A stretch of 64,000 nucleotides of DNA from Macrostomum lignano (taxonomy: Eukaryota), in contig NIVC01001269.1 of NCBI GenBank assembly GCA_002269645.1, forward strand, positions 1 through 64,000, given 5' to 3'. Positions 13,568-45,535 of the stretch are shown in pieces (the stretch's first letter is position 1; every line of letters starts with the position of its first letter). The notes under the pieces are model-generated. The model saw nothing but the letters and a program-made list of their open reading frames with translations, searched no databases and was not told the origin of the DNA. Made by a program: the position numbers and the translations under genes.

Positions 13568-15591
13568 GCGATGCAGTCTGCCTGATGAGATAAATAGGAA
13601 TCCAACTTGGTTCCGACAAAAACAAGTATAAGAAATCTAAAAGCCCTCTGAATTTAAGAGGTCCCACATTGTCAACTTATCAATCACTCTGTCCACAACA
13701 CTATAGCTACAATTTAGCTTTTCAAGCCAGCTACCACGTAATCCAAACAAGACTGTTAGAAATTGAAATATCCCTTTATCACCTTCCTATAATCTTATTT
13801 TGTTTTCTTCGTTTTTTTCGAACACGAAGCACTATTTATAACTATACAGTCTCAAGACTTGCTATGTGCATGCACAAAAAACTTTGCAAACGTTATCTAC
13901 TTAGCTTGAAAGCAGCTGTATCCATTAAAACGCTTGCTTGAAATCAAGACGTAAATAACGATCACGGTATACAGTGAACTTTTTTAAATAGCTAACCTGA
14001 TAAAAGACGCTGAATGTCGAAATATGTCCTTAATAGATGTTTTTCGTGTAAAATACATAATGTAAACTGAGAATTAAAACCTAAAAAACTTGCACTTTCC
14101 AGATTTAAGTGAGAAAAATCAAGCACATTCAGCAAAATTGACTCATCATTCTTTGCGATAGTTTCTTCTCGGGCTGGTATGAGCTAAAAGATCGCATAAT
14201 GAAGTTGCAACTTGTTTTTTTCTACTACTTTTAGTAAGAAACGGAGCATCTAGGCAATTGCATTATCTCATCTCATCTAAAAATTTTAAAATTGTTTTTG
14301 GGCTTTGGAAGAACCAGTAAACTTAGAACTTTTTATGCGAAGTATAATGCAAAATTGGGAAAAATAAAAGAACAAATCCTTGTACTCGTATATTTCTGGT
14401 ATTGTACATTTGTTAGTTTGCAACCGGAATGCTAACTAAATGAAGACTGCTCAGAGAAGGCTCACTCGAACCCCAGTCAAAGGACGCCTTAAATTACACG
14501 TCAAGAAAAGATCATTCTTCATTTGATGGCGGTTGAACCCGTCCTTAAAAATGCATTTTCTTAGAGATTTAGAACAAGATTTTTTTATCGTTTCGTAATT
14601 TTGAGTCATGTCTGTCTTAGTAGACTTCTTTTTCAATTTTACAGTTGCAGTAAATTTTATTGGGGTTTTACTTCACGTGCCATCATCATTTGTGATTGCG
14701 TAACAATGAGAGGTCGTTGAGCACTTTAATGTATCCAATGAAGTTCCTTATTTACTCCAGTTGCTGAATATGGTAAGTGACAGAAATTGTTGAAACGAAA
14801 TCAAATTCAATGCTTTATTTTTGTTTAACAGAATGCTGCACTGACTTCACAAACGATTGAACTTCTTCAACTTTTCATAGGCTCGACTAGGAGAGGGGGC
14901 TGTTCCAGTAAAATATCCTGTAAAATGCTATAATTCCATAACACTTAAAAAAAGAAGAAAATACTTTTTCTTGGCTCTTTACTTGTCAACACACGGAGTA
15001 GACGACGTTCAGATAGGTAGCAAATGTGGAAACCTTGCAGTCGAAGTAGCCATGATGACCCACTCCATTTTTATACATTAATCAGCTGTCAACTCCTCAA
15101 GCTGTCTTTCATTACGGCTGTGGCTAAATTCAAATCAAGCAGGAAATGGAAATGCATAGCCAATGAACGCAGAGTTGAGGTGAATATAGCTTCTACGGAC
15201 TGGCTGAGACTGGACTGGTCCAGTGATGAAAAAATGTTTTATATGAAGAATATAAAAACATACCTGCCTACCGACAGACCATTTTTAGTATACGGAAGTA
15301 GCGGATATCATATTAAGATGCTCGGTATCTGAAACAGAATCTAAACAGCTATTTGAAAACCTCGAAAATATGGTGGTGAGTAATTTCTGGGGGGCCTGGC
15401 GCTTCTTCTTAAAACCGGGCAGAATAATTTACGATTTCGTCCTTTTAAAAGCTCTTCAGACTAAATAATGACCCGGGTAAAAATTCAAAGAATAATTTCT
15501 CACATCCATCGAAGTATAGGAATAAGATAAAATTTTAATAATCACAGGATGGCTGTAAGCCACCCTGATGCCACGCCTAAGACGACAAAAT

Positions 15592-15730: not shown

Positions 15731-15873
15731 ACTCTCTGTGTCAAAAGTCCAAAAATAGTCTGAAAGGCATCTTCATCAATTAGAATTTAATATCCTCCAT
15801 TGAGGTGTGTTGAGTTTTCCTCAACACAGTTTTGAGTTTTGAGGAGCCGCTTGTGTTTTCCTGTTTTCCTAGA

Positions 15874-16497
15874 CCTCCGCATCCTCATAAACTAGACCTC
15901 CGCATCCTCATCAGCTAGTCAGCATCCTTCATCAACTAGACCTCATCATCCTCCATCAACTGGTCAGCATCCTCATTAACTAGACTTCCGCATCCTCATC
16001 AACTAGACCTCCGCATCCTCATTAACTAGACCTCCGCATCCTCATCAACTAGACCTCCGCATCCTCATTAACTAGACCTCCGCATCCTCATCAACTAGAC
16101 CTCACCATCCTCATCAACTAGACCTCACCATCCTCATTAACTAGACCTCCGCATCCTCATCAACTAGACCTCCGCATCTTCATTAACTAGACCTCCGCAT
16201 CCTCATCAACTAGACCTCCGCATCCTCATCAACTAGTCAGCATCCTTCATCAACTAGACCTCACCATCCTCATCAACTAGACCTCACCATCCTCATTAAC
16301 TAGACCTCCGCATCCTCATCAACTAGACCTCCGCATCTTCATTAACTAGACCTCCGCATCCTCATCAACTTGACGCTCAGCATCCTTCATCAACTAAACC
16401 TCATTATATCCTCATCGACTAGTCAGCGGCCAGCATCCTTCATGAACTAGACCTCAGCATCTTTATCAGCTGGACACTCATCATCCTTCATCAACTA
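15874..16497. repeat. 23-bp minisatellite
   Basis: Unit catcctcatcaactagacctccg with variants. Confidence 0.9.
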
Positions 16498-16956: not shown

Positions 16957-18007
16957 TCAAACGCATCTTCGACTAGCGCATCGCTTGAGGCCTATGAAAT
17001 CTTCTACAGACTTGTGTTTTCCTGGCTCTTTCCACTGCTGATGCTGTTCGGAACCTGGGGAAATTTATCCTGCCTGCTGGTGCTGTTAAAGAGGCCCAAG
17101 TGCTTTCCACTCTCAGTGAGACTCAGCATGCTCATCTGCTGCGTTATCGATTTTTTACTAGTCTCTGTCAAGTCAGTGACGCACTATCTATCCCCCAACG
17201 TGATGGGAACCATTCTAATGGTGCACGACTACAGAAAGAACACGAGCCACTTTGTGTGCATCGTTTATTACGCCGTCACCTTCTGGCTGCTGCACGGCAG
17301 TCCCTTCATCCGGCTGGGGCTGTGCTTTCACTCGCTGGCGGTCACGCTGGCCCCGCTGAGGCAGGCCAGTCTGCTTCGGAAGCGGAATGTGATCATCTAC
17401 CAGCTAGTGCTGCTCCTGCTCAGCTTTGTGCCATGCATCCGGGTAGCCAGCTCGTTCTGGTCCACCAGATCAGACCGGTCTGTTCCGCAACGATTCAATT
17501 GAAGTTTTCTATCGGATTTTCACTGTTTTTGTGAGCAGACTTTTTGTTGTCTGCTGTCTGCTGGTCACGCTGCTGATTATCTTGATTAGCATGAGGCGCA
17601 CGAGGCAACAACTTGGCGGCTCGGTGGTCTCTGGGGTCAGGAGCGGGCCGCAGACAAAGACTGTCACCAGCATCTTTGTTTCGACCAGTCTGATCTTTTT
17701 TGCTTGCGAAATGCCCTACAATGTGGCCAGGGCCCTGGTCAACCTAGAGCTGGTCAAGGAAAGTGTTTCCATAAAGCAGACGCTGCTCATGCTAAACAAC
17801 CTGCTGTACCTGAATCCGGCGCTAAACTGGATGCCCTACCTGATTGGCCGCAAGTTTCGACGCTTGTACACCGAGTTTTACAGCTGCAACAAGTGCTGCC
17901 GAAGCAGAGCAACCAACGTCCATGGACAGAGACGCGAGCATATTCTGATGCCAGAGAGCTCTGTTCAAAGAAATAATCTTGATAATGAGCAGGTGTACAC
18001 TTACTGA
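16957..18007 (+). pseudogene. Class-A-like 7TM receptor, paralogue 4, single frameshift
   Basis: Acceptor ttccag at 16956, then SNASSTSASLEAYEIFYRLVFSWLFP. The frame breaks near 17479 (about -2 bp versus paralogue 1) and resumes LFRNDSIEVFYRIFTVFVSRLF to the stop at 18007. Could be an assembly indel in an intact gene. Confidence 0.7.
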
Positions 18008-19275: not shown

Positions 19276-19598
19276 TGCCTACTGATCACCCTGATGGTGA
19301 TTCTGGTCAGTGTGAAGGGCACCCGCAAGCAGCTGGGTGGCTCGGTCACCACATGCGGAGGTTCACGACTTGGCTGTCAGACAAAGATCGTGCCAAAAAT
19401 CTTTGGCTCGAACGGCCTCATCTTCTTTGCTTGTGAGAGTCCTTACAGCATTATGAGAGCCCTGGTCAACCTGAATATCGTAGAGGAAAGTGAAGAACTA
19501 TTCGATATATGTTGTTCTCCTGAATATGCTCTGGTGTACCTCAATTCCGTGCTATACTGGCTAACCCTTACCTCATCGGAATAAATTTTCGTCAGCAG
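19276..19598 (+). pseudogene. 7TM receptor fragment, paralogue 5 (TM5-TM7 only, decayed)
   Basis: CLLITLMVILVSVKGTRKQLGGSV...QTKIV...LIFFACESPYSIMRALVNL aligns with paralogue 4. TM1-4 are absent and there is a frameshift near the end. Confidence 0.8.
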
Positions 19599-20602: not shown

Positions 20603-23600
20603 CTATCGTAGAGGTGGAAACCTCAGTCTTTTCCTATTTGTCGATCGGTAGCACGCGATCGTCCTGTTTTCATTGGTTGCTGCTGTGGTGTGCGATGCGA
20701 ACGGCAACACTGACATCAGGTCGTCGTTCATCAAATCGAACTGGTTGATAAGTACGTTGCACAGCGTCAGAATGAATCTTCCAGAACACATGCTCCCTTT
20801 GACAACACTATGGATGTACAGACAGTCCTCATGTTGACCTACGTTCAGGTCGCCGACGCTTCGAGCCTCTGTTCGCGCCTGAACATTGCCTCGGTTTGCT
20901 TGAACAATAAAAACCTTGGGCTTGTTTTTCAGCTGCGGGCACATTCTGAACTGTTTGTACACACTTTTCAGTGAGACGCGACTTCCGTCAGCTGAGTACA
21001 CGTAGCCCTGCTCTCCGTGCGACAGGATGCAAAGAACAAGTGCGTCCTCCTCAGCGTACTCTTCTGGCTGCCGGTCAATCGTCAGGAGGTGACCGAAGGT
21101 CTCATGAGACGGGTTATTCAAGCTGAGGACGTCGAAGCCTAGCCGACTAAAGCAAATATAAAATCTATCGTCCATGAGAGATCGCGGTGGAAGATTTGTC
21201 TCTGGTGGAAAATTAGTGACTTGTATTAGGATGGCTCTTCCGCGACGTGCACTTTGCATCGGATAGTACGGAGAAGAATCTGGATCGTCTGGACCACCAC
21301 CATCATCGCCACCACCGCCACCACCTCCACCACCACCACCGCCACCACCTCCACCACCACCACCGCCACCATCGCCACCACCACCACCGCCATCTCCGCC
21401 GTGGCCGTTGCCTCTGTCGCTTGGCTCCTCCACAGGAGAGTTGGATGGATCGCCGCTCTCTTCAGGTTGGTAGCCGCAGCCGGTTTCGCTATCAATACTT
21501 AATCCACTTTCGCTTCCTTCGCTTGTTGGTGCGTGCTGTAATCTAAAATTATAATATATTGCCTGTGTTTGAATACTAATCCAAAGTAACTACGAGATCA
21601 AGATAAAATAGCAAACAACTTACATCAAGCGTGAACAGTTGATGTGACCGGAAAACTTCGCCCATTGATAAGCGTTCATATCCCTCTCTCCGGTCAAGCG
21701 CCAGTAATTCGCGTCTTTCATCAACTCTCCGAATATTTTAATGACCTCAATGTGGCCGCAGCGAGCAGCCCAGATCAGAGGTGTGTTGCCGAAGCAATCT
21801 TTCAGCCATAAATTTGCTCCGAAGTCACACAACATTTTGAAAGTTCCTGCGTGACCCTGTTTTGCTGCGTGGACTGCAGCTGAAAATTTATACACGTCCT
21901 GAAAAACAATTAGCATTTTCTTAGGGTTTCATTCATACCAAAAAGCAGGTTTAAATTTTTAACCTCACCTGGCAATCTATATCAGCTTTCATTTTGATGA
22001 GCTGCTCCAAAACAGATTTCTGGTCATTTATGGCCGCCAGAATCAGCGGGGTTTGTCGAAGATTATTTTCTCTATTTACTTCTGTCGTCATAGTGCTGGC
22101 GTTGTTTGTCAATATTTTCTCAAACGCTATCAGGACTTCTTTGTGGCCTTTGAGGGCGGCCCAGGAAATGGCTGTCCGACCCATTACATCCTGGACACTG
22201 ACCAGGGATGTGTCAGAATTTCTATTGAGCAGCGATAGTACCAGGTCATGTTTGCCTCTGGCGGATGCGATTGTTAGCAGAGTCTGATTCAAAGTCCCAA
22301 ACTTGTGGGCTGTATTCTCCTGAGATCTGCACAGGGCTGCAAGCTGCGCGTCCGACCACTTATCCGGGGACGCAGAGCTGAATATCCTAATTTGTGATGC
22401 GATAGATGGATGTAATGGATGTGATACGAGTATCTTTCACTTTTGATAGCCCCAGATGTATAGCATTTTATTTGTCTATCTAATAAAATAACAATTAAAA
22501 CATCAAATGGAATTTAATTATCAATGGTTGCTAATAAAGTTTGTACTTAAGAGATTAAAGCAGTGGTATCTGCGGATGTCTAAAACCAAGAAACATGGCT
22601 AACAGTGACAATAACTTACTGCACATCGTCAGATGCAGCGCTATTCAAGAAGAATTTCTTGATCAGACTGGTGACTGCAGAAGCTTCAGTACCGAATTTT
22701 TCGGATCCACCTTTCATCTCGGGCATGCCCAGCCGCCTGTTCACCTCTGCCACCACGTTCACAATGTGCTCTTTGCTGAATTTTTCCTCTTGAACAACGG
22801 AGCATAGAACCTCAGCAAGCGATCCCTTCTCGCCTAGTGAGCCACCGCGGCAGAGAAGAAAGTCTTTCTCAGGAAGTTTAAACGACGTCTCTTCCAGCGG
22901 GCAGGCGTTTAGGGTTTCAGGCTGCTGCTCAGTCTGAACAAAGAAGATCTTCGGTTTGTCCTTTAGAAAGGAGCACTGGTTGACTCGGAACCTGGCCACG
23001 ATGTCTCTTACTTCGACCTCTTCACCGTCGCTAGCGAAGAAGCTGGCACCGGTCCCGTGTCCGATGATGAAGCACACGAAGCTGCCCACGTCGCGGAGAT
23101 CGGACCTGACTATTTTGTTGACCGCTGCAAAGATTTCAGCACTAGTAGGCTTACTTGTGCATGGTTGGATTGTAAAACCAAGGTTTTCGAAGGTGTCGGT
23201 AATTATTTTAACTTCCTTCTGTTGGTTGTGGCTTGAGCTGCGATTGTAGGTCTCGACACTTATTACCAAGCACAGGCCTTTTGCCGTAATGCTCTCTGTG
23301 TATATGTCGTTTTCCGGCTTGTTTGAAGTTGAACTAAATGAAAATGTGCAAAATAGATTTCCAAATATTTTCACCACAATGATTCGAAAGATTCAAATTT
23401 TAGCAAAGATTTGTGTGAAGCTGACTTACGCGACAACTTGCTCTTCGCCAATCCTAACATGCGAATGAGCCCCATCAAACTGTAGCTCATGTTCCTCTTG
23501 GCCTTCCGTTTCAAACGCAGGAACCTTGCACGTCAGTCCTCCTTGTTCTGGTTTAGAAAAATATTTAAGTTAGTACTAGATGTACGTCACCTGGTGCCAG

Positions 23601-24810
23601 TGGCCAAAATGCCAGGTCAATTCGATATTCAAGCCTTGTACGAGCTAGAAAGCCAGAAAAGTTAGGAATCGAAAAGTCGGGAAAAACATGCATGTGATTG
23701 CTTTACCTTGATCATAAATGAGAGGATGCTTCATCAATTCGATAGCCAGCATCCGGTCACTCGGTTGTTTTTCAGTGCATTTGTTATAGAAATCTTTCAG
23801 ATTAGCCGAGCAACTTTCCGGAAGCACTGGAGCCCCCTGCCGTTCCACCCGGCGAACAATGGCCAGCATGTTCTTGCACTCCCAGTAGGGCCGTTTGGCG
23901 ATCACCATCTGGTAGATCACGCAGCCGAACGCCCACACATCGGAGGCGCAGCTATAGGGAGGGTCCTCGGTCTCAGAAGACAGGAACATCTCAGGCGCCA
24001 TGAAGTGCGGGTCGCCTCTCTCCCCAGTGGACGGATGCTCCGTTACTGTTTGGAGAATCTGGATGGCCAGACCAAAATTGACGATCACAATTCGATCGCC
24101 CGGACAAACGAGCACCGTCTTGCAGTTGATGTTACGGTGAATCACCGGATCGTTGAGGCCGTGCAAATATGAAAGGGCGTCGCATATCTGAAATCAGTCG
24201 GTGATTCAGGATTTTAATATCGTTGTTTAAATAAGCAGCCGAACACGTTTTTAAAATAATTGCCAATTTTTACTGTTAATTTTCTTATCCGCGTTTAAAT
24301 AAGTGGTCATGGACTTCTTAGTGAAGTCGTGTATTTTTCTATTAGCTCATTAGCTCGTAGAAGTCATTAAGACCCTTCGAGTACCCTTCAAGCCCTGGCT
24401 GGGTTCATGGCAAAAAAAACTTTCGATAATGTACAATTTTGCAATTATTTATTACGCACCTGTCTTGTAAGATTACAAATGCTCTTCTCCGGCAAGCCTT
24501 GTTGGGCGGTGATATGCCGTTCCAGAGTTACCGGTCCCGAAAGCAAGCTCATCTGTACGGTCACGCACATCTGCTCCTTGTCCACCATGATTCGTTTGAA
24601 TTTGACCACGTTTTTGTGATCCAATGCGCACAGCTTCTTAGCCTCTTTGTCGCAAGCCTTAGTCAGAGTTTCTAGCTTATCATGAGCTCCAGCTTCGACA
24701 AGATGCCATGGCAGGCGGATTTGTTTTACAGCCTGCAGTTGCTCTGCCTCGCCCACCGCTTCGGCGTAAGTTTCGCCTCGATCGCCTCTCGATAGAAGCT
24801 CCCGGACCAT
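20603..24810 (-). CDS. Gene A: pseudokinase - caspase-like - ankyrin repeats - poly-Gly - caspase-like protein (1095 aa)
   Basis: Exons 24810-24460, 24187-23707, 23547-23430, 23333-22620, 22377-21969, 21898-21624 and 21542-20603. All introns are GT-AG with phases 0,1,2,2,0,2 and the total is 3288 nt in one open frame. Kinase motifs AVK, HRNINCKT, VNFG, MAPE. Caspase motifs IIGHG/KPKIFFVQTEQQ and ILSHG/KPKVFIVQANRG. Ankyrin motifs GRTAISWAA, QTPLILAA, GNTPLIWAARCGH. An extra upstream exon cannot be excluded. Confidence 0.85.
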
Positions 24811-26083
24811 TGCTTGGCTTAGGGGAGAGTTTCAAAACAGTGTTTTACAGCTTCATGTGAGCTTCAAATTTACCTGTAATTTTTTGCCAGTGCAGTTAAT
24901 GTTTAACTGCAGTGTCTCTGCTTAGCCGTAAAAAAGTGGCAAGGCTTTTTAAAAGCTGTCTAGCTATAGTGTCATTGGTAGCAAGCTTACTCTGTCAAAT
25001 AGAGGCTTGTTTCTCTTGCCATTATAATACCTTATCTGTCTTTTCTCTTTTCTACCCCTAGTTTTCTAGCGCTGTCCAATAATATTTGGTTCTGTATGAA
25101 GAATTAAGTACAGTCTAGACAAGTACTTGCGTTGTAGGGTATAGACTGGGAGAGAAACTATCTGGGGGAGGGTTAATGTACATTAAGTACAGCACGTTGC
25201 TGTCAGGCAGCATTCTGGAGAGTTTTACACACTGCTTTGCATATCAAATTGAAAAGAAAAGAAAAATAATAAAACAAGAGTTGCATTTCATACCCATTTG
25301 TGCAGATGTTGTCTCTTGGCTCTCATGCCATTTTATAGCCAGCAATTCTTAGAACCTGCTCTCGTAGCATGGAGGCTTAAAACCAACTGGTTTTTAGTTA
25401 GAAATTTGGTACCTTATTCTACTGTACAGCGCTTTCCGCTTAGCTAGCTAGTGCAGCCAGTCCCTATCTGTCCTATTTTAGAAAGAAACAGTCATTTGGT
25501 ATATAAATAATAGCTAATTTCTCACTTAGTAGCTATATGTGAATTCGCTATTGGTAATTTCAACTAGCGGCCGTTGCTCACAGAAGCTTGTTGCAAACTT
25601 TTTTTGCCTGTAAAAAACTTTTGAAACATAACAACTAGTGAGAATTAAACAATCGCGAGTGCGACTGTTTGTGGCTTAAATACAAGGTAAGAAGCTTCAC
25701 GACAAGTGCTTATTTGCTAATCGTACCAGCTTTTGTAGGTCCAAGCGACATGTAGCCCCTGTCAGTGACTCCAGGGGGAGGCGTGGCGGGCCACATCATC
25801 CACGCCGAGTCACACTGCCCACAGGCGGAGTAGGAGGTGCTGCTGCTAGCGCTGCAAACGGGGAGGACAGACATGGGCTCGGCGCTTGTTAAACTGCCTT
25901 CTGGCTGACGACCGCGCACGCTCAAGCCTTCACACACGCTCTGTGGTGTGACGCTGAATGATACTGTTTTATTATCGTGTATGCATATAGGCTATCTGGG
26001 GTTAAATAATTATCCTATCTGTTGCTTTGTCCGAAGATATTTACGTTGGCAAAAGACCGCAACCAATTTTCCTTCACTTCAGC
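24811..26083. promoter_or_regulatory. Putative bidirectional promoter/5' UTR region between genes A and B
   Basis: 1273 bp separates the two divergent ATGs. Candidate 5' UTR introns are 25687-26082 (gtaaga...cttcag) for B and a short gtaaat...ctaag intron just upstream of A's ATG. Based on position only. Confidence 0.45.
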
Positions 26084-29000
26084 ATGGTCACAGACTACTC
26101 AATCGGGGAACAGATCGGTCGAGGCGAGTTTGCTAATGTCCATGCCGTCACTGTCAAGGATGCAGACTGGAACCCAAGACCCACTTGTGTAAAGCTGATC
26201 AGACTACCGAAGCACTTGGATCAAGGTTTAGACGAAAAAGAGCTCACTGAATTGGTAGATAAACACAAGCCACTAATTGGACTGAAACACCGGAACTTAG
26301 TTCAAATTGAAGATCTTCATGCCATTCCTCAAGACTACTCTGTCGCAGTGTTCATGGAGCGGTTTCAAGGAAAAACATTGGAATATTTGCTGAAAACGAA
26401 GGGTGCCATCACCCAAGAAGATAAGATTCGGCTCTACTCCAAGCAGGTGAGCACTGCATGGATTTCTATGACGTGTTAATTCACAAGCCCCATAACTAAA
26501 CAGTCTCTGACTTATATCCAATTAATTAGTTGGTTTTTAATTTGATTAAGCACAATTTTCAACTTCTCTGCAGATCTGTGAAGCTTTGAAGTATCTCCAC
26601 CACGACTTAAAGGACCCGGTCATTCACAGAAACATCTGCAGTAAAACAGTTATGATAGACGACAACGATTTAGTTAAGTTAATTGACTTTGGCATATCCA
26701 TTCAGCTGATGGATGCAGTGAGTCATCAGGTGACGCAGTGTCCGAGAGGCCACCCGAACTACATGGCTCCAGAGTTGTTCTTGGAGGAATCCAGCTCTGC
26801 ATTCCAGAGCCTCTACAGTCGGGGCTCAGACATCTGGGCTTTCGGTTGCGTTGTGTACGAGATGACCACTGGTGCGAAACCGCTTGGAGATTGCAGAAAC
26901 ATGCTGGCCATAGTTAACAAAATCAAATATCACGGAGCTCCAAACCTACCGGAGGCGAGCTCTGAGCAGCTGAGAGACTTCTATAAAGGCTGCATGAGAA
27001 AGAATAGGAAAGAGAGAATGTCGGCAGCAGATCTGCTACGACACGAGTTTCTCAGTCCTGGTATGCAATTTTATGGTTTTTTGAGCTAAATTTATATTTT
27101 TCACTGTTATTTTGGCTAGTTGTTAACTAATATAAGCTCTCTTTTAGTATATGACAAACGCTGGGACAATGTCCGTCTGCTGAGCAGAGGAGGCTTCGCA
27201 GAAATTCACGAGGCTCTCACAGACAAGGGCATCAGTTGCGCCGTAAAAACTCTGAAGCTGCCCCTTCAACTAGGTGATCAACGTGACAAAGTGCAGAGAG
27301 AAACCGATCGGGCTATCGAAAGCGAGATGAACCTGTGCAGATTACGGCATGAAAACATCGTAAAGATTTTTGACATTGTGCAGCCAGAGATTGCCACGGT
27401 TGTTGTGTTCATGGAGCTGCTGGATGGCAAAACTTTGGAATTGGTGATAGATGGAAAACCACTGGATGAGGGAATGATTCGTTTTTTCGCTTCACAAGTA
27501 AGCATGAATACTGAGTTGAATTATCAGGTTTGCTCATTATCCTGATCGCATTACTTTCGTTTACTCGCATTTCAGATCTGCAGCGCACTTAGCTACATGC
27601 ACAATCAGCCAGAAAAATCAGCCGTGATTCACAGAGACCTCAACTGCTCAAATATCGTGATTCTAAATGATAGCAAAGTCAAGTTGATTGATTTTGGCTT
27701 ATCGCACAGGCTAGGAACGTCGATAAGTCACAGCACCGCCTCGTCAGTGAAGGGCACGCTGAACTTTATGGCGCCGGAGCTACTGGGTGACGACGAAAAA
27801 ATTGTGTACAGCACAGCATCAGATGTCTGGGCATTCGGTTGCGCCGTCCACCAGATGGCCACTGGAGAGCGGCCGTTCGAGAAAATTAAAAACTTAAATC
27901 GTCTTATTCGCACTCTGAAAGAGCAAGGCGCCCCAGTATTGCCAGATTCGTGTTCGAGTCTGCTGAAAGATTTCTATGCCAGTTGCGTTATGCGCCAGCG
28001 CTCGGAGAGGGCGTCCGCTATGGCGTTGATGAAGCACGAGTTTCTGACTTTCAAGTAAGTCTGCTTGCATTTTGTCTATTAAAGTTCATATTTTATATCA
28101 ACGATAGCTCCGTATTTTTGTACTTTTAGTCGAGCATATTGTTTCCTTTCATTCCTTTAATTAGAGCCTCAGAGTACAAGGATGAAGACCGATACGAATC
28201 CAGTGCTAGCCAGAAAGGAATGTGCGCAATCATTGACATGCTCCCATCTGGCTCGGACTCAAAACTCTCTTCTAAAATCAGCAAAAGTTTTGAAAAGTTC
28301 GATTTCATCGTCAAGTCGCTACCAGACGCAACCTGTCAAACCGCTTGGAGCTTCATCGGGGACATCGCAAACAGTCAAGAGCTTGCAGACTCAAAATGCT
28401 TTGCTTGTTTTGTTATAGCTTCCGGTTCGAACGGACAACTGTACTCAGCTGACAATGATGATAGCATTGAAATCAGAGATCTGCTGGCCAGGTTTCGCTC
28501 TAGCCAGTGTCCCAGCCTGAAGGACAAGCCGAAGCTTTTCTTTATTCAAGCTGTGCAACCGGCCAGTGCAGCCGCCGGCTTGGACGAATCCGCGGCGCGA
28601 ATTCGAGACGATGACTTTCTGGTTTGCATCAACGATGGCAACCTGGATTCATCGTTCGTTGGGACATTGTGCACTGTTTTAGAAGAGGACGAATTTAGCG
28701 ACCTAGACATTGAAGGAGTTGTGGGTGAGGTGAACGATCGCCTAAAACTGGAACCGTTGGTTAAAGCGAAAAACCGGGCACTTAAATTCATGTCGGAAGC
28801 AGTTTCCACTCTGACGAAGAAATTTTACCTGAAGCCGGAACGGGTGAAACCGGATCCCAGGTGAGCTTTTTCGTTGTTTTAGAGGCTTATTGAGAAGAAT
28901 GCACAAAAATTAGCTAAATCAGCAACACTAATTGCTGGTATTCGAGGAGCACTTCATCCTGCAGACAAACAAGTTTCCAGTACCTTACTTACCTAACTTA

Positions 29001-31727
29001 CTTATTGCTCAATGAAACGGTTGGGCCCGATGATGCCATACGTGTCCATCTTTGATCACTTCGCTTCCACCACAAGAGCTTTATTTAAAACAGTTGCTTA
29101 GTGAATAGGAGGGATTTCTTATTCTTCCCATTGATTCATACTGTTTAGCATAGAAAGATAACAAATATTTCAGAGCGGAGTCGCCAGAAAAGTGGGACGA
29201 TGAACAATTGAAGAGGCTAATAGAGGAGGAGGCAAGTCAATGCGCGAACCCGGACTTCACCAGCCAAAAGTACGGCCCGTTGGGACAGACGCTGCTGTCG
29301 ATCGCAGCAGAGAAGGATAGCAGCGAGTTAGTTAAGCTTGCGCTCCAGGCAGCGACCACTGTTCCATCCATTCACTCGGATCTCGACGTGATGGGCAGGA
29401 CGGCCCTTTCCTGCGCCGCAGCCAAAGGATCAGACGCGGTTCTGGCCGCTTTCGAACAAGCATTCATCGATGCGGCCGATGTTCAGAAATCAGTGGTCAA
29501 CGAAGCCAACTATATGCGCCAGACTCCCATCATTGTGGCAGCCAAGCAAAACAAGACGAATGTTCTCGAGAAGTTGGTTCAGATGGGAGCCGATATCAAT
29601 CAGAAGGTAAGGCGGTGTTGATACCCTTTAGTTTTACTCGAAATTATATATTTCAATTACAAAAATGTTTTATCAGCTGTGAATCGCGAAAAACAGACAG
29701 AGATACGAATAGAAATAAACAATGCAGGATAGGAACCAATTGCTGATTTATTGCATAGTTTAAGAAGTAACTTTGTGGCCTTTATCAAAGGGCTCAAGAA
29801 ATTGTACAGCTGTATCCATGCGCAGATGCCCGACCAATCATGATGTTCTCTTTTGCTGTCTCGATGCGGTCTTCTTAAAGCTATTGATACGAAACAAATA
29901 TGTTTGCGTTTTTGCGATCGCCTACCGGCTTTCACGTTGGTCTTTTTGGGACTTTGAGACCTGGCTCTCATGATCTTTAGTCAGATGCATCTTGCGTCGG
30001 AACATTTGAAGGGGTTTTATCTCTGGGTTTGAGTGGCTAGAGTCGTCTGATCTGTATGATCTTCAACAGTTGCATCATTCGATATTTGGCTAATTAGTGT
30101 TAGTGTTTATAACTTCCGTCGTCTCTACCTTCCATTACTTTTAGAGTTTGTACTTTCTGTACATCCAGCTGATTTACATTTCAGGATATTGTAGAAGCCA
30201 CCGCATTGATCTATGCGGCTAAATTCGGATTTGTTGACGCGGTGCGCAAGCTGCTGGAACTCGGCGCCGATGCAGTTCTGGCAGACCGTTCGGATCAAAC
30301 ACCGCTAATTTGGGCAGCTCGCTGTGGCCACACCGATGTTATCAACGCTCTATCTGAAAAGCTTAATAGTCTGGAGCTCTGGAACCACCGGAGCACGCGG
30401 TTGCGCAACTTTACTGCGCTTGAATGGGCTAAGCTCTGCGGCCATGACGCCACTGCGGACAGGATTCAGCAGATGTAAGTAATTGGCGACGTAATTTTTG
30501 TTCCAATGGCTGAATGCTCTGTAGAAATCTGCACCTCCTGCTTTCATGGGCGTAGGAAATTGGCCGTCACGAGGGTCCTCCGTTTCCACCAGACTATTTA
30601 AAATTTTTCCGTGAATATCTCCTAAGATACTAAACTTTTTCCTGTCTTTAACCCTCACAATGACACGCATGAGCCATCCATGATCCTGTTAAGCTGTTAA
30701 GAAGTTTTTAATTATTTAAATATTTTAAATGATCGATGCAAACTATTTCAGAATTCAACAGATAACCGGAGCGACACAGGAGGCGGACGCCACTACCGAC
30801 CCACAATCAAGGGGTGGCGGTGGCGGTGGTGACGGTGCCAGTAGTGAAGCGACAGGAACTTCCGCCGGAGGAAGCGGCGGCGGAGCCGTTGGTGGAGGAG
30901 GTGGTGCTGATGAAGTTGGTGGAAGGGGTGCCGGTGGCGGAGGTGCCGGTGGCGGAGGTGGCAGTGGCAGTGGTGCCGGTGGCGGAGGTGCCGGTGGCGG
31001 AGGTGGTGGTGGCGGAGGTGGTGGTGGCTGGCCTATTTACCATATGAACAGCCCAGTCAGAGGCCTAGCAATAGTTATCAGTCGGAACACGATTCCACCA
31101 AATGCAGGTTTTCAGAACATACATTGGGTGCCGGATCAGCAGACTCAATCTTTTGTCGGTTGTTTAAGCGACCTACGCTTCGATTTCTTAGTGCTACCAA
31201 ATATTCCGAGAAACCTTTATTATAATCTCCGAACCACGGTACTCAATTTGCCGACGTATACCATCTCTGATTCTCTTCTCCTCTGCCTGATGTCTTATGG
31301 CGAACACGGCCGAGTGTATGACTGCAATGGAGAGCGTGTTGAGCTGGAAACAATGTTTCGACAGTTCAGAGAGTGTCCGCTGCTCTCTGGTAAGCCGAAA
31401 ATATTCATGGTCGATGCTGGTCGCGACATTCCTCATGAGAGACTGGTGTTGGAGCAGGCAATTCAGGAGAACGCGGGCCAGCACCAGGACTGTATTTACA
31501 TTTACAGTGTTGTAAAAGGAAACGCCTGCTACCAAGAGGTAGAGAACGGCTTTTGCTTCATGCAGTCCATGGTGAATTTACTGCGCTGGCCAAGTTTCGA
31601 TTCAGCCACGGAAGATTTTGCGTCCTTTCTGACGAAAGTCGTCAGCGACGTGTCGAACAAGTGCACAGCAAAGCAGATTGTCTGCCACACGAGCACCTTG
31701 CAGCGCCATATCATTTTAGGAAATTAA
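26084..31727 (+). CDS. Gene B: pseudokinase - kinase - caspase-like - ankyrin repeats - poly-Gly - caspase-like protein (1357 aa)
   Basis: Exons 26084-26446, 26574-27060, 27148-27497, 27576-28054, 28165-28860, 29174-29606, 30185-30474 and 30752-31727. All introns are GT-AG with phases 0,1,0,2,2,0,2 and the total is 4074 nt in one open frame. Kinase 1 has HRNICSKT/DFG; kinase 2 has CAVK, HRDLNCSN, DFG, GTLNFMAPE. Caspase motifs VIASG/KPKLFFIQAVQP and LMSYG/KPKIFMVDAGRD. About 6 ankyrin repeats. Confidence 0.88.
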
Positions 31728-32888: not shown

Positions 32889-33542
32889 CAGTGGCGTATA
32901 CTCGAGAATTTTATTTGCAGGATTTGCAACATTACAGAGACCAGTATTTGGTCTCTAGGTTAATACCTCGATCGCTTGTTGGGCGCCCCTGTCTCTTGGT
33001 GGGTGCCCCTGTCTCTTGGTGAGCGCCCCTGTCTCTTGGTGTGCGCCCCTGTCTCTTGGTGGGCGCCCCTGTCTCTTGGTGGGCGCCCATATCTCTTGGT
33101 GGGCGCCCCTGTCTCTTGGTGGGCGCCCCTGTCTCTTGGTGGGCGCCCATATCTCTTGGTGGGCGCCCCTGTCTCTTGGTGGGCGCCCCTGTCTCTTGGT
33201 GGGCGCCCCTGTCTCTTGGTGGGCGCCCCTATCTCTTGGTGGGCGCCCCTGTCTCTTGGTGGGCGCCCATATCTCTTGGTGGGTGCCCCTGTCTCTTGGT
33301 GGGCGCCCCTGTCTCTTGGTGGGCGCCCCTGTCTCTTGGTGGGCGCCCCTGTCTCTTGTTGGGCGCCCATATCTCTTGGTGGGCGCCCCTGATCTCTTCT
33401 AACAAGAGAAGGTAATTAAACACGAGCCCCTCTGTCATTCGTCAAGCTCGCGGTTACCTCTTATTTAGTTTCTTGGGGATTACAATTATTATAAAGGGGC
33501 CATTGGGGGGGGGCACCTCCACCCTAGCTGCGTACGCCACTG
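32889..33542. mobile_element. Non-autonomous hAT-type element containing a 20-bp tandem array
   Basis: TIRs cagtggcgta (32889) and tacgccactg (ending 33542); perfect 8-bp TSD agacatgt at 32881-32888 and 33543-33550. Internal array of gggcgcccctgtctcttggt at ~32980-33390. Confidence 0.9.
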
Positions 33543-38200: not shown

Positions 38201-41200
38201 TACCCAAAATTGCGTCGCATTTTTGTTAAAACTAAGTCGCACAGCCAACAAAATTTTGGAGGTTGCGCATGTATGAGCAAGACACTTAACTCTGCATTGC
38301 TTTAGTTCACCCAGCTATAAAATGGGTGCTAGTATTAGCTGGGATAATTGAGGGTGTATGTGGCAACCCCCTAGTCCTTGGACTGAACAGCTATATATGG
38401 CCTTCAGATGTGCCATGCAATAGCTATGGCTGAGCTGTTGGTTGCACATCTGCTTATTATGGCAGATATAATCAATTATTATTATAATAATTATTATTAT
38501 TATTAATATTATTGTTAATATTGCAATATAGAACTTATAAAGGTTGAATTTAGCCAAAATAGTAATTAAAAAATATAGTATCAAAGTAACAATCTTTAAA
38601 TTTTTCTAAGATTTCTTAGTTGAATATTCCTAACTACATATTGTGTAATACTAGTGCCAATGTGAAAGGAAAATAAAATTATTTAAAAAAATTTTCTTTC
38701 TTCACAAAATTTTAGCCTGCTTACTTTGGACCAGTGTGCCAATAATACTTTTGAAAACATTGGTCAGCAAGTGCAGAAGTATTTTACTAAACAAGATGGA
38801 TTCAAGGTTGGCACTGCTTTGGTAAGTAGAAGAATGCTTCATATGCCATTTTTTATATTTTAATAGTAGAATTTGAGTTCAATTGTTAAAGGCAGGTGGG
38901 TGAAAGGTTGTGAAGGGAGGTGGGTAAAGGGAGGTGGATGAAGGGAGATGGAATGATGGATGAAGGGTGGAGGGTAAAGGGAGGTGGGTGAATGGAGGTG
39001 GTAAAGGGAGGTGGGTGAAAGGAGGTGGTAAATGGAGGTGTTAAGGGGAGGTAGGTGAAGGGAGGTGGTGAAGGGAGGTGGGTGAAAGGAGGTGGTGAAG
39101 GAAGGTGGGGGAAGGGAGGTGGTGAAGGGAGGTGGGTGAAAGGAGGTGGTGAATGGAGGTGTTGAAGGGAGGTAGGTGAAGGGAGGTGGTGAAGGGAGGT
39201 GGGGAAGGGAGGTGGGGGAAGGGAGGTGGTGAAGGGAGGTGGGTGAAAGGAGGTGGTGAAGGGAGGTGGGTGAAAGGAGGTGGTAAAGGGAGGTAGGTAA
39301 AGGGAGGTGGTGAAAAGAGGTGGGTGAAAGGTGGTGAAGGGAGGTGGGTGAATGGAGGTGGTGAAGGGAGGTAGGTAAAGGGAGGTGGTGAAAAGAGGTG
39401 GGTGAAAGAAGGTGGGGGAAGGGAGGTGGTGAAGGGAGGTGGGTGAATGGAGGTGGTGAAGGGAGGTAGGTAAAGGGAGGTGGTGAAAAGAGGTGGGTGA
39501 AAGAAGGTGGGGGAAGGGAGGTGGTGAAGGGAGGTGGTGAAGGGAGGTGGTGAAGGGAGGTGGGTGAAAGGAGGTGGTGAATGGAGGTGTTGAAGGGAGG
39601 TAGGTGAAGGGAGGTGGTGAAGGGAGGTGGGGGAAGGGAGGTGGGGAAGGGAGGTGGTGAAGGGAGGTGGGTGAAAGGAGGTGGTGAAGGGAGGTGGGTG
39701 AAAGGAGGTGGTAAAGGGAGGTAGGTAAAGGGAGGTGGTGAAAAGAGGTGGGTGAAAGGTGGTGAAGGGAGGTGGGTGAATGGAGGTGGTGAAGGGAGGT
39801 AGGTAAAGGGAGGTAGGTAAAGGGAGGTGGTGAAAAGAGGTGGGTGAAAGGTGGTGAAGGGAGGTGGGTGAATGGAGGTGGTGAAGGGAGGTAGGTAAAG
39901 GGAGGTAGGTAAAGGGAGGTGGTGAAAAGAGGTGGGTGAAAGGTGGTGAAGGGAGGTGGGTGAATGGAGGTGGTGAAGGGAGGTAGGTAAAGGGAGGTGG
40001 TGAAAAGAGGTGGGTGAAAGGAGCTGGGGGAAGGGAGGTGGGTGAACGGAAGTGAGGTTAAAAATGAACACCGACAGTTTTTGCATTCTCATCTCGCATT
40101 CGCTTCGGCAGGTGTTGCTCCTGCAGAACCCCGATCTGCTGCCTAATCGGATGCAACAGCTGGTGGCTCTCTACCTGCTCTGGGAGTTGACCCGAGTTGA
40201 CCCGCCCAATGTGAACCCATTTCAACCCGCGTTTGTTTACGCCATGCGATCGGACGAGAACGATACGAGGCATTTTCGCGTTCCCTGCCTGCCGCTGCAG
40301 GAGCGCGTGTTCTTGTACAGCCTGCTGCAGAGCACCCACGCCAGCGGCCAGCCTTCTAGGGAACTCTTGAAGAAAACCCCTCAGCAGGTTTGTAAAACTG
40401 TTGGTGTCTGTCATCTTGAAATGCACGAGTCAGTGTTTCATTAATCATTACGAGGCAATAAATCAGCCTCAAACCTAAATAAATCATATATCTGCAACCA
40501 AAAATCATCATTCAGAAACCATAAATCATCATTCAGAAACCATAAATCATCATTCAGAAACCATAAATCATCATTCAAAAACCATAAATCATCATTCAAA
40601 AACCATAAATCATCATTCAGAAACCATAAATCATCATTCAAAAACCATAAATCATCATTCAGAAACCATAAATCATCACTCAAAAACCATAAATCATCAT
40701 TCAGAAACCATAAATCATCATTCAGAAACCATAAATCATCATTCAAAAACCATAAATCATCATTCAGAAACCATAAATCATCACTCAAAAACCATAAATC
40801 ATCATTCAGAAACCATAAATAATCATTCAAAAACCATAAATCATCATTCAAAAACCATAAATCATCATTCAGAAACCATAAATCATCATTCAAAAACCAT
40901 AAATCATCATTCAGAACCATAAATCGTCATTAAAAAGCCATAAATCATCCTTCAGAAACCATAAATCATCATTCAGACGCTATAAATTATCCCCAAATCA
41001 CCGCAGATAGCCAACAGTGTATTCCCGCCCAACGTGATTCCCAGCGAGCTGGACCTGAGTTTCCTAGAAAGCCCATACGCGGAGCGGGCCAAGGAGATGC
41101 CGGTGGTGAGTCGGGTTGCTATGCCGTGCGTCCTGTCCGATCCCGAGCGCCGTCTGGCCTCGATGGAATCTTACAGCGGCTCGGGCAGCTCTGCGGAGGC

Positions 41201-42481
41201 CCAGCGCCAGGTGCTGGACTCGCTGCTCACCGGTGATCAGGCAGCTGTCCGATCTCACCTGCGGCCGGAGTTTCTCCTGCTAGCGCCGCCGCTGCACAGC
41301 GTCGGGATCGAGGACGAGCTCGTGTGGATGTCGCCGACTGGCCTTGAGCACACCGCTCAGTGGGACGCCTCTATGTGCCAGAGCGGCTCTTCCGGGGGTG
41401 AGTGACATTTGAAGGTCAAACTAGTTATTTTCTAAGCTGCTAAAATGCTACAGGTGTCGAATCTCACCCAACATCACCTGAGAATCTCACCCAACCCCAC
41501 CTGAGAATCTCATCCAACCCTATCTGAGAATCTCACCAGAATCTCACCCAATCCCACGTGAGAATCTCACCCAACCCCATCTGAGAATCTCACCCAACCC
41601 CATCTGAGAATCTCACCCAACCCCATCTGAGAATCTCACCCAACCCCATCTGAGAATCTCACCCAACCCCATCTGAGAATCTCACCCAATCCCCACGTGA
41701 GAATCTCACCCAACCCCATCTGAGAATCTCACCCAACCCCATCTGAGAATCTCACCCAACCTCGTCTAATCTCACCCAACCCCACCTGTGAATCTCACCC
41801 AACCTCACCTGAGAATCTCACCCAACCCCTATCCTCCCAGCCGAGACCCGGAAGCTGATGGTGCGGGCCTTCAAGCAGACTCTGCAACAGTCGCAGATTC
41901 GCCAGCTAAACGAGGCCATCTCCCAGGATCCCAAGCTGATCAGCCTAAGCGGCATGTCTCCATCCCGGCTGCCCGAACTGGTTGAGCACAATCCCCTGGT
42001 TGCTATCGAGGTGCTGCTCACCTTGATGAAGGCCAGCTCGCCCCAAGTCACAGACTATTTCTCTGTCCTAGTGAACATGGAGATGTCCCTGCACAGCATG
42101 GAGGTTGTCAACCGCCTGACAACCAGTGTTGAACTGCCTGCGGAGTTCATCCACCTGTACATCAGCAACTGCATATCGTCGTGCGAGTCAACCAAGGACA
42201 AGTACATGCAGAACAGGCTGGTCAGGCTGGTGTGCGTGTTCCTGCAGTCGCTGATCCGCAATAAGATTATTGACGTCAAGAATATCTACATCGAGGTGCA
42301 GGCTTTCTGCATCGAGTTCAACCGCATCCGGGAGGCTGCTGGCTTGTTCCGGCTGCTAAAATCCTTGGAGTCCAGCGATGGCAGCGTCGACTCCGCCGCC
42401 GCTTCTGCCGCTCTGGCTGCTGGCGGCGGCGGCCCGGGTTCGAATCCGCCTAGCGCCGCCACCACGCCTTCGAAGCCGTAG
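35275..42481 (+). CDS. CNOT11: CCR4-NOT transcription complex subunit 11 (483 aa, 5 exons)
   Basis: Exons 35275-35312, 38716-38821, 40112-40387, 41007-41397 and 41841-42481 join in frame (1452 nt). The C-terminal domain [35 protein letters not shown]...[25 protein letters not shown]...[22 protein letters not shown] and the N-terminal LLQNPDLLP...ALYLLWE are recognisable CNOT11 sequence. Confidence 0.95.
35401..35450. other. Short near-perfect palindrome (hairpin) in CNOT11 intron 1
   Basis: ctcacc-gc-cagtgatgtc...gacatcactg-ag-ggtgag. Confidence 0.6.
36453..37111. mobile_element. MITE with TA target duplication
   Basis: TIRs ggccccatagtgcggaagga and tccttccgcactatggcc, flanked by TA at 36451-52 and 37112-13. 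Subterminal gta(c/t)gaca motif repeats. Confidence 0.75.
37641..37937. mobile_element. hAT-type MITE, copy 1
   Basis: TIRs catacatgcgcaac and gttgcgcatgtgtg; 8-bp TSD tgtagcct at 37633-37640 and 37938-37945. Confidence 0.85.
38031..38275. mobile_element. hAT-type MITE, copy 2 (opposite orientation)
   Basis: TIRs catacatgcgcaac and gttgcgcatgtatg; 8-bp TSD agcaagac at 38023-38030 and 38276-38283. Body is the reverse complement of copy 1. Confidence 0.9.
38891..40052. repeat. Purine/G-rich degenerate satellite in CNOT11 intron 2
   Basis: Repeats of gaagggaggtggt, gggaggtgggt and aaaggagg. Confidence 0.9.
40495..40980. repeat. 21-bp minisatellite in CNOT11 intron 3
   Basis: Unit aaaccataaatcatcattca(g/a). 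Confidence 0.9.
41460..41830. repeat. 23-bp minisatellite in CNOT11 intron 4
   Basis: Unit gagaatctcacccaaccccatct, running up to the acceptor at 41840. Confidence 0.9.
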
Positions 42482-42835: not shown

Positions 42836-43348
42836 GAGTTTCGAGTTGAAGTATCTCTGTTGTTTTCTCTGCTTTTGCATCTGTTAATGTTTGAGTTCAA
42901 AACCCCTGAATTAAAATGCATGTACCTGACACGGCATTTTGTAAGCATCTAGATACTTGAAGTAGTTAAGGTGTAACTAGGCTGTTAGTAATATAAATTA
43001 ATTGTTATGATAGGTTCTGTCGTTCTATTTACTGCTTGACTTCTTTGCATTGCTGATTTGTATTTCTGAATGATAATAACGTTAAAACTTCTTCTAGTTT
43101 TACCCGTGTTCAACTCACTGTCTGTCTAAAATCTTGTTGTCTATTGCCCCATCCTGACTGTTGATCTATACTCCTTAGTACGAGTATTTTATAAGGAAAA
43201 TTTAAAATAAACAATAAATCATCAGTGCAACATTGAGATTTGGTTTGTGTACATCTCCCTTATCGCCTCTAGTGTTTGTGAAAACCTTATGAATATTTTT
43301 ATTGTCGATTGTTTCTATCTAAAAAAATTAACTTGGTGTGCCATCTAA

Positions 43349-44140
43349 GGGTGAGATTTAGGTTTGAGGCTGTACTATCTATCTCAGGGTGAGATTTCAG
43401 TTTAAGGCTGTACTATCTATCTCAGGGTGAGATTTCGGTTTGAGGCTGTACTATCTATCTCAGGGTGAGATTTCAGTTTAAGGCTGTACTATCTATCTCA
43501 GGGTGAGATTTCAGTTTAAGGCTGTACTATCTATCTCAGGGTGAGATTTCAGTTTAAGGCTGTACTATCTATCTCAGGGTGAGATTTCGGTATGAGGCTG
43601 TACTATCTATCTCAGGGTGAGATTTCAGTTTAAGGCTGTACTATCTATCTCAGGGTGAGATTTCAGTTTAAGGCTGTACTATCTATCTCAGGGTGAGATT
43701 TCGGTATGAGGCTGTGCTATCTATCTCAGGGTGAGATTTCAGTTTAAGGCTGTACTATCTATCTCAGGGTGAGATTTCAGTTTAAGGCTGTACTATCTAT
43801 CTCAGGGTGAGATTTCGGTATGAGGCTGTACTATCTATCTCAGGGTGAGATTTCGGTATGAGGCTGTACTATCTATCTCAGGGTGAGATTTCAGTTTGAG
43901 GCTGTACTATCTATCTCAGGGTGAGATTTCGGTATGAGGCTGTACTATCTATCTCAGGGTGAGATTTCGGTTTGAGGCTGTACTATCTATCTCAGGGTGA
44001 GATTTCAGTTTGAGGCTGTACTATCTATCTCAGGGTGAGATTTCGGTTTGAGGCTGTATTATCTATCTCAGGGTGAGATTTCGGTTTGAGGCTGTGCTAT
44101 CTATCTCAGGGTGAGACTTCCGTTTGAGGTTGTTCTATTC
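43349..44140. repeat. 38-bp minisatellite
   Basis: Unit gggtgagatttcagtttaaggctgtactatctatctca. Confidence 0.92.
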
Positions 44141-44745
44141 CAGATTTAAATCGTCTCCTGAAATCAATGTGATACGTATAGAAATAATTTCTTTTTGTGA
44201 TCCTTGTGTGATTTTGAATCTTGTTGATTTAATAGAGATTTTCTGCTTTGAGTCTATAAGTCTCATCAATTATTTCTCACGTGCTACGTGACAAGCGCTG
44301 CGAAAGAAATCAACAAGTGTCAATTCAATAATTCACTGAGACGGACTTTTACTATGTTTTGAAAGACCTCAATGAAACATAGCGTGAAACATAAGAATAT
44401 CCTTACAAATTCTGGACTTCTGTAATAGAACTGGAATGCTTGTTGGACAGACTAAAAACAATTGATATAATAAAACGCTCTGGCCGTTTAGTTCAAAATG
44501 TTGGTTTAGCCGCTTGGCTGAGGCATTGGGGTTGGAAATGAGGTAAAAAAACTTTTTTGAGGAGTTTTTGAACTTATAGTGGTGATATTTTTCGGATTTT
44601 GTTTAACAAATTCATTTGTGTTCTGTGTTAACTGGATCTTTATTGGCAATGATGCGATGCTTAGGGACCAGGGGGGGGGGTCTTAAACCACCTGAGTTGC
44701 CCATGAGCGACAGGTGTAGAATAATAGGGTTTTGCCACCAGCTAA

Positions 44746-45480: not shown

Positions 45481-45535
45481 GAGGATACAAACAAAAACTA
45501 ATTGGCACAGTTTCGCTTGCACAGCCAGTCGGCAG

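Follow-up and report, generated by a model that had tools for sequence, protein, structure and literature searches.

We describe here a gene of the free-living flatworm Macrostomum lignano, referred to as gene B, which lies at 26084-31727 (+) of a 64,000-nucleotide stretch of contig NIVC01001269.1 (assembly GCA_002269645.1, positions 1 to 64,000; hereafter the window) and encodes two kinase domains, two caspase folds and a set of ankyrin repeats in a single polypeptide. Its eight exons, spliced by script from the sequence, join into one 4074-nt frame of 1357 codons followed by TAA; all seven introns are GT..AG, and the 14 splice sites and 1357 codons are undamaged. Gene B is confirmed as an intact, previously unannotated gene, far beyond what chance would produce, and it is a member of a Macrostomum-specific family built from MAP3K-like kinase, caspase-fold and ankyrin modules. 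With a probability of roughly 55%, we propose that it is a non-proteolytic scaffold or regulator of active paralogues, comparable to cFLIP, drawn from that same family.

A first-pass annotation of this DNA had put forward an eight-exon, 1357-amino-acid (aa) model with canonical splice sites and matching phases. Independent splicing reproduced that model exactly, and the two junctions it singled out, 28054/28165 and 28860/29174, coincide with the rebuilt exon boundaries. The stops at 28058, 28864 and 30478, at which it had allowed that separate genes might end, are the ends of the raw open reading frames (ORFs) holding the exons. We conclude that exons 1-8 form a single gene, with a shorter isoform ending after the ankyrin repeats as a real possibility. 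The exons are listed below; here and throughout, a slash within a motif marks a splice junction or, in the linker, a candidate cleavage point.

26084-26446 (+): exon 1, N-lobe of kinase domain 1 (pseudokinase), residues 1-121; ATG at 26084, donor in phase 0.
26574-27060 (+): exon 2, C-lobe of kinase domain 1; HRN, with the Mg-binding Asn lost (HRNICSKT) and DFG and APE kept.
27148-27497 (+): exon 3, N-lobe of kinase domain 2, with Gly loop SRGGFAE, VAIK Lys and alphaC Glu.
27576-28054 (+): exon 4, C-lobe of kinase domain 2; HRD, Asn, DFG and APE present, catalytic-loop Lys changed to Asn (HRDLNCSN).
28165-28860 (+): exon 5, middle pseudo-caspase with full p20 and p10 fold and a caspase-3/7-like C-terminal end, STLTKKFYL.
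29174-29606 (+): exon 6, linker, then ankyrin repeats 1-3.
30185-30474 (+): exon 7, ankyrin repeats 4-6; donor CAGAT/GTAAGT in phase 2, read-through stop at 30476-30478.
30752-31013 (+): exon 8, 5' part, disordered Gly-rich linker from a (GGN)n repeat, with QEAD/A at residues 1042-1046.
31014-31727 (+): exon 8, 3' part, C-terminal pseudo-caspase with full fold, then TAA.

The domain order given in the first-pass annotation (pseudokinase, kinase, caspase fold, about six ankyrin repeats, Gly-rich linker, caspase fold) was upheld by Pfam searches of the spliced product and by alignments. Pkinase was matched twice (E 2.4e-90; residues 7-277 and 292-557), Peptidase_C14 (PF00656) also twice (E 5.7e-34) and Ank_2 in four stretches (E 7.8e-31), and six ankyrin repeats can be counted by eye over residues ~825-1033. 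The (GGN)n coding minisatellite spans 30919-31028. No DED, CARD, death or RHIM domain was found in the gene B product (Pfam, E<=0.1), and an Rfam search found nothing within the window.

In kinase 1 the VAIK Lys, DFG and APE remain, whereas the alphaC Glu, HRD Asp (HRN) and Mg-binding Asn (HRNICSKT) are gone; with three catalytic residues lost, its description as a pseudokinase stands. Of its catalytic residues kinase 2 is missing just one, the catalytic-loop Lys, where it has Asn (HRDLNCSN); the VAIK Lys, alphaC Glu, HRD, Asn, DFG and APE are in place. Because this Lys-to-Asn change is common to most of the aligned family kinases (HRDINGNN in P0230, as compared to HRDIKGNN in MAP3K19), we predict that catalytic activity of kinase 2 is likely but not certain. 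The closest solved structures for both domains are MAP3K2, MAP3K5/ASK1, PLK2/3, MAP4K4, TNIK, WNK, PAK and MST3, the closest named animal kinases are MAP3K19, and no RIPK occurs among the best 60 PDB matches of either domain. The earlier suggestion that gene B condenses RIPK-type signalling into one protein is therefore unsupported, the kinases being nearest to MAP3K/STE structures and unaccompanied by RHIM, death or DED domains.

The two kinase domains of gene B are just 39% identical to each other, and an assembly artefact was rejected on this ground as the source of the tandem. Kinase 2 shares 52-54% identity with the kinases of P0004 and P0010, as compared to 39-44% with those of the four-domain genes. 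An intron falls at the same position and in the same phase in kinase 1 (SKQ/IC) and kinase 2 (ASQ/IC), and exon 2 ends in phase 1 within the SP/VY junction, so that the boundary between the kinases of gene B falls on a phase-1 intron; the inter-kinase junction (HEFLSP/VYDKRWD) mirrors the one that separates the tandem kinases of P0004. Given the shared intron position and phase, the phase-1 boundary and the P0004-like junction, the tandem probably arose through duplication of a phase-compatible exon pair.

Both caspase-like domains have a caspase fold with p20 and p10 regions. Using phmmer against PDB, the middle domain matched caspase-7 at E 1e-16 and the C-terminal domain matched caspase-3 and caspase-8 at ~1e-12. 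AlphaFold models of both, built with family alignments, reached a predicted local distance difference test score (pLDDT) of 77 and a predicted template modelling score (pTM) of ~0.8, and the best PDB matches of both models in Foldseek were caspase-7/-6/-3/-8 (E 1e-15 to 1e-17, template modelling score 0.7-0.8). The terminal STLTKKFYL of the middle domain is, in the family alignment, the counterpart of the conserved C-terminal strand of canonical caspases (e.g. STLTKQLYF). An active caspase is recognised by its catalytic His-Cys dyad and by the S1-pocket arginines that bind the P1 Asp (Arg179 and Arg341, caspase-1 numbering), and these are missing from both folds. Aligned with canonical caspases, the middle domain reads ASG for SHG (His to Ser) and QAVQP for QACRG (Cys to Val), and in the family alignment it has lost both Asp-binding arginines (Arg179 and that of the Arg341 loop). 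The C-terminal domain reads SYG for SHG (His to Tyr) and DAGRD for QACxG (Cys to Gly), with no Arg at position 179 and Gln at 341. The label of pseudo-caspase given to each fold at the outset therefore holds, the dyad being absent in both, and we infer that gene B lacks protease capacity and that neither fold could serve as a protease.

The loss in the middle domain is not recent. P0001, a UniProt model of 1178 aa that shares 93% identity with residues 1-1033 of gene B, has the same middle-domain substitutions (ASG; QAAQP), and because these are shared the protease-dead middle domain predates the split between gene B and P0001, with the frame open since. The core of this pseudo-caspase is strongly conserved across the family alignment (FVCF.I..G, RDI.ARFR..QCP.LK.KPK.FF.Q and SSLTKKF.L), and the domain itself is conserved in all aligned paralogues of the kinase, pseudo-caspase, ankyrin and caspase type.

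Gene B has a paralogous neighbour, gene A, on the opposite strand, and a second such pair is found elsewhere in the assembly:

20603-24810 (-): gene A, seven exons, 1098 aa, head-to-head paralogue of gene B.
24811-26083 (strand not applicable): intergenic region, 1273 bp between the divergent start codons of genes A and B.
NIVC01000166.1 (GCA_002269645.1), 3434-8159 (-) and 10001-15370 (+): second head-to-head pair, a P0005-like gene and the P0007 gene, on opposite strands.

Gene A encodes a pseudokinase (HRN, NFG), a pseudo-caspase, ankyrin repeats, a poly-Gly stretch and a caspase-like domain, the last of which retains the His and has Asn in place of the Cys (QANRG). Five of its introns correspond to introns of gene B, and all five agree with these in position and phase. 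A bidirectional promoter is presumed to lie in 24811-26083; comparison of this region with that of the paralogous pair brought out no conserved block. The C-terminal domains of P0005 and P0007 retain Arg179, the His, the Cys (QSCRD and QACRG, respectively) and Arg341. In the NCBI annotation the minus-strand gene of NIVC01000166.1 is just 559 aa long, and ankyrin and caspase ORFs go on downstream of it. Gene A and the P0005-like gene in the corresponding position share 74-75% nucleotide identity in short stretches, and this identity between corresponding genes suggests that the gene pair was duplicated as a whole.

The core layout of the family, as read from its predicted proteins, is kinase, pseudo-caspase, ankyrin repeats, linker and caspase, and around it other combinations of the same modules occur in M. 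lignano. For instance, P0230 (BOX15_Mlig018903) has ankyrin repeats, a kinase and an active caspase with both S1 arginines kept, P0010 has ankyrin repeats, a kinase and a pseudo-caspase, and P0004 has ankyrin repeats and two kinases, while P0122, P0237 and P0315 are plain ankyrin caspases. The family can be described as a flatworm ankyrin caspase with a kinase and a dead caspase copy added to its pro-domain; gene B has a further, N-terminal kinase, and its C-terminal caspase fold is no longer protease-competent. We also note that P0122, P0237, P0315 and P0124 are M. lignano ankyrin caspases with the Cys intact (QACRL, QACRH, QSCRQ).

All close matches of gene B come from M. lignano. P0001 and P0008, the latter 98% identical to gene A and with a model that stops short of the last exon, are by their sequences allelic or homeologous copies of the window genes, and the full 1357-aa architecture appears in no public model. 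P0001 starts with translated sequence resembling a 5' untranslated region and then continues unbroken through exon junctions 4/5, 5/6 and 6/7 into exon-8 sequence; because it carries exon-8 sequence, though out of frame, exon 8 lies in the same predicted mRNA.

How exon 8 is joined is the point on which the full-length product has to be weighed, and several observations count against it. The gene B model is built from genomic sequence, and the public models of its closest copies never carry the C-terminal domain in frame. After ...ADRIQQ, P0001 reads exon 8 in the +1 frame, giving LRRTPLPTHNQGVAVAV...; P0002 ends ...ADRIQQ at the exon 7/8 junction; and P0008 and P0121, both of the gene A type, end ...SRLM at the equivalent junction, reading through into the intron. 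The first-pass annotation had held that transcripts terminating at the stop at 30478 would speak for separate genes, and this is borne out in part: homologue models do end at or just past that junction, and P0001 continues across the junctions that precede it. These models would fit an alternative in which a shorter protein of two kinases, pseudo-caspase and ankyrin repeats dominates and the C-terminal pseudo-caspase is a minor isoform or a relic exon. Such a product could be made by retention of intron 7 (stop 30478) or through a frameshifting acceptor 28 nt into exon 8, and the P0001 tail, with its VAEV repeats, fits an alternative acceptor (ACACAG/G) at that distance from 30752. Use of this site (30752-30780) may represent a real truncating isoform or an annotation artefact, and the (GGN)n repeat could also disrupt transcript assemblies and so break the models.

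We nevertheless favour the in-frame join of exons 7 and 8, because of the acceptor tract, the consensus helix, the colinearity with P0007 and P0005 and the common exon layout. Only the canonical acceptor at 30752 (TTTCAG/A) has a pyrimidine tract, whereas GACACAG/G has none. Joined in frame, the sequence reads IQQ-I-IQQIT, which agrees with the family consensus helix IQ..IR.L and so restores a helix conserved in the family (IQ..I..L). Residues 284-1355 of gene B are colinear with full-length P0007 and P0005, whose models hold the C-terminal caspase; in the models of P0005, P0006 and P0007 the corresponding exons are likewise spliced without a frameshift, and the last intron recurs in the P0007 gene. 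The exons of gene A are arranged as in the P0007 gene, and gene A agrees with gene B in the phases of the introns that the two share. Finally, the exon-8 frame is open for 324 codons and is predicted to fold as a full caspase domain. Dominance of the shorter protein thus appears rather unlikely to us.

A further matter to be set against a maintained full-length protein is the uneven divergence of gene B from P0001. Identity between the two is 89% for kinase 1 as compared to 95% for kinase 2, 93.5% for the middle pseudo-caspase and 95% for the ankyrin repeats, so that kinase 1 (residues 1-283) has diverged about twice as much as the other domains. One could read gene B as a young, functionless duplicate in a fast-expanding family, on its way to becoming a pseudogene, with its dead sites as the marks of that decay. 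All protease residues are lost and kinase 1 is dead, the coding repeat is prone to slippage, and gene B stands 7% from its closest copy where gene A stands 2% from its own. A decaying gene is, however, hard to square with a 4 kb frame and 14 splice sites that are intact, with the retained and confidently predicted structural core of both caspase folds, with a kinase 2 that retains nearly all catalytic residues, or with a middle pseudo-caspase conserved in every aligned paralogue of the kinase, pseudo-caspase, ankyrin and caspase type. The middle-domain substitutions, moreover, are older than the P0001 split, and both copies have stayed open through at least 1033 residues. We regard decay as distinctly unlikely.

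We therefore return to the proposal that gene B is a non-proteolytic, cFLIP-like regulator, a comparison already present in the first-pass annotation and a plausible one. In this model each pseudo-caspase fold would use the interface of normal caspase dimers to bind the other or an active C-terminal caspase of a paralogue such as P0007 (QACRG) or P0005 (QSCRD), and such pairing could plausibly tune the activation of active paralogue caspases, as cFLIP(L) does with caspase-8. The ankyrin repeats would bind or recruit partners. Kinase 2, which is MAP3K-like, would supply all enzymatic input or output, provided that HRDLN still permits activity, and would link the protein to phosphorylation, with kinase 1 as an allosteric or docking partner. 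We speculate that QEAD/A in the linker (residues 1042-1046) might be a caspase site. Two considerations temper the proposal: heterodimerisation with paralogues is wholly inferred, and kinase 2, lacking the catalytic-loop Lys, may be inactive too.

Alternatively, gene B might be an immune sensor of the 'integrated decoy' kind, an animal counterpart of the plant tandem-kinase receptors. The dead kinase and the two dead caspase folds would then be lures for pathogen effectors or inhibitors directed at the kinases and caspases of the host; once bound, these would trigger kinase 2 or a partner caspase. The head-to-head neighbour would act as a co-receptor, as in paired nucleotide-binding leucine-rich repeat receptors, such that the gene pairs would be sensor and partner feeding a caspase- or MAP3K-type output. 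The pseudokinase-kinase tandem, the lineage-specific expansion with shuffled modules, the two independent head-to-head gene pairs and the pseudokinase being the fastest-evolving domain are all consistent with this, and tandem kinases of plants offer a precedent (PMC8761531, PMC6170490). The analogy is architectural only, however, and both members of the window pair are protease-dead, hence the pair contains no executor. We consider a decoy very unlikely, and the cFLIP-like regulator remains the reading that we prefer.

The distribution of this architecture was assessed with a profile built from five homologues and searched against 1.84 billion representative proteins, the best 150 matches being listed. 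M. lignano paralogues came out on top and every match with both kinase and caspase was from M. lignano; the remainder were large ankyrin proteins, including giant gastropod proteins with ankyrin repeats and a caspase. That the architecture is absent outside Macrostomum can be claimed only within these best 150 matches, a list swamped by giant ankyrin proteins. A word-indexed search with the P0007 caspase domain found no parasite ankyrin caspases and gave three weak matches. The remark in the first-pass annotation that no animal protein was known to join kinases, caspase folds and ankyrin repeats does not survive, since Pkinase, Peptidase_C14 and Ank occur together in several predicted M. lignano proteins of UniProt and NCBI. 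Ankyrin caspases are also present in Penaeus (P0126, P0131), and the Daphnia magna 'Caspase-8' (P0199) joins an HRN pseudokinase to a QACQG caspase. Beyond these, an ENA metagenome protein (P0171) combines Peptidase_C14 with PF15009, presumably the STING/TMEM173 family; together P0199 and P0171 point to further unexplored caspase fusions.

Flatworm caspases were surveyed in 2024 (PMC11463336). Ankyrin caspases, first seen in Schistosoma, were there placed as sister to the DED (caspase-8-like) caspases and presumed to be active initiators; FADD was described as lost in flatworms, and the DED caspases as lost too in the parasitic ones. The survey also described, from M. lignano, a single caspase whose pro-domain resembles a kinase and which was placed as sister to the ankyrin caspases, and stated that ankyrin caspases are restricted to parasitic flatworms and that platyhelminths have no further unusual pro-domains (PMC11463336). 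The present data extend and partly correct this picture. The stated restriction to parasitic platyhelminths is contradicted because free-living M. lignano has ankyrin caspases. The M. lignano kinase pro-domain caspase, with its kinase N-terminal to the caspase and from the same species group, almost certainly belongs to the family of gene B; it was, however, a single sequence, given with no mention of ankyrin repeats, internal pseudo-caspase, tandem kinases or protease-dead members, and gene B differs in having two kinases and no active caspase. Like gene B, with its six repeats, linker and C-terminal fold, the flatworm ankyrin caspases carry their repeats directly upstream of the caspase domain, but in gene B the host is free-living, the module sits behind a kinase and a pseudo-caspase, and the caspase is dead.

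Partial precedents exist for each of the other elements. cFLIP(L), also known as CFLAR and the only human pseudo-caspase, is a full caspase fold without the catalytic Cys and His that heterodimerises with an active paralogue (PMC7586951), and it is our model for gene B; it consists of tandem DEDs and one pseudo-caspase, whereas gene B lacks DEDs, carries two pseudo-caspases together with kinases and ankyrin repeats, and evolved independently. Caspase-16, which has been called unique for its caspase-fold pro-domain (PMC12198278), and the Mytilus coruscus caspases with two CASc domains (PMC10967218) place a dead N-terminal fold ahead of a C-terminal caspase, as do P0005 and P0007. The C-terminal domain of caspase-16 is active, though, with no kinase or ankyrin repeats beside it, and gene B, in which both folds are dead, does not belong to that type. 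The Daphnia magna protein P0199 and an Eisenia andrei protein (PMC11463336) have a kinase-like domain N-terminal to the caspase, and the Daphnia kinase is likewise HRN, but these fusions contain only one kinase and one caspase fold, without ankyrin repeats, and their caspase is active (QACQG in Daphnia); they probably arose independently of those in Macrostomum.

The RIPK1/RIPK3-caspase-8-cFLIP complex unites kinase and (pseudo)caspase in one signalling unit, as gene B does, and RIPK4 and ANKK1, again like gene B, combine a kinase with ankyrin repeats, although in gene B these come after a caspase fold. RIPKs are, however, TKL kinases, whereas the gene B kinases are STE/MAP3K-like and lack RHIM, death domain, DED and CARD. 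The plant tandem kinase proteins (Yr15/WTK1; PMC6170490, PMC8761531) have the same pseudokinase-kinase tandem and sometimes extra integrated domains, but they come from another kingdom and unrelated kinase lineages and have no caspase folds, such that the likeness is one of architecture only. What is new in gene B is the tandem of kinases together with two dead caspase folds, in a family already glimpsed in the literature.

Elsewhere in the window, a tandem array of single-exon paralogues with a multi-pass membrane, G-protein-coupled receptor-like look and no Pfam match lies at 2418-3224, 6634-7638, 12605-13567, 17014-18007 and 19294-19584 (+), the fourth copy being split into several ORFs and the fifth a fragment. 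An exon of a homologue of CNOT11 (CCR4-NOT subunit 11; Pfam E 3.6e-52) is found at 41858-42481 (+) with minisatellites on its flanks, and a 775-codon pol ORF of a Ty3/gypsy-type long terminal repeat retrotransposon (end of the reverse transcriptase, RNase H and integrase) occupies 53969-56296 (+) in a block of 60% G+C, its reverse transcriptase truncated N-terminally. Minisatellites are unusually dense (15869-16497, 32975-33398, 38889-40054, 40479-40991, 41459-41829, 43343-44138, 44745-45481, 46694-48287 and 62963-63737), with periods of 14-54 nt and 8 to 86 copies, and they give rise to long, spurious repeat ORFs on either strand and to a GC skew that is strong locally.

The pro-domains of caspases determine how a caspase is recruited and switched on. 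Flatworms have lost FADD, and the parasites are also without DED caspases, which bears on how non-mitochondrial cell death is started in these animals. Our findings indicate that the ankyrin-caspase module is not confined to parasites and that in Macrostomum it has gained a MAP3K-like kinase and an internal pseudo-caspase, in a family that holds both protease-competent and fully protease-dead members and arranges them in divergent gene pairs. The gene B model also corrects existing gene models that are truncated or frameshifted. As M. lignano is amenable to RNA interference and transgenesis, an independently evolved cFLIP-like regulator, and a direct coupling of kinase and caspase, would be open to experimental test in this animal.

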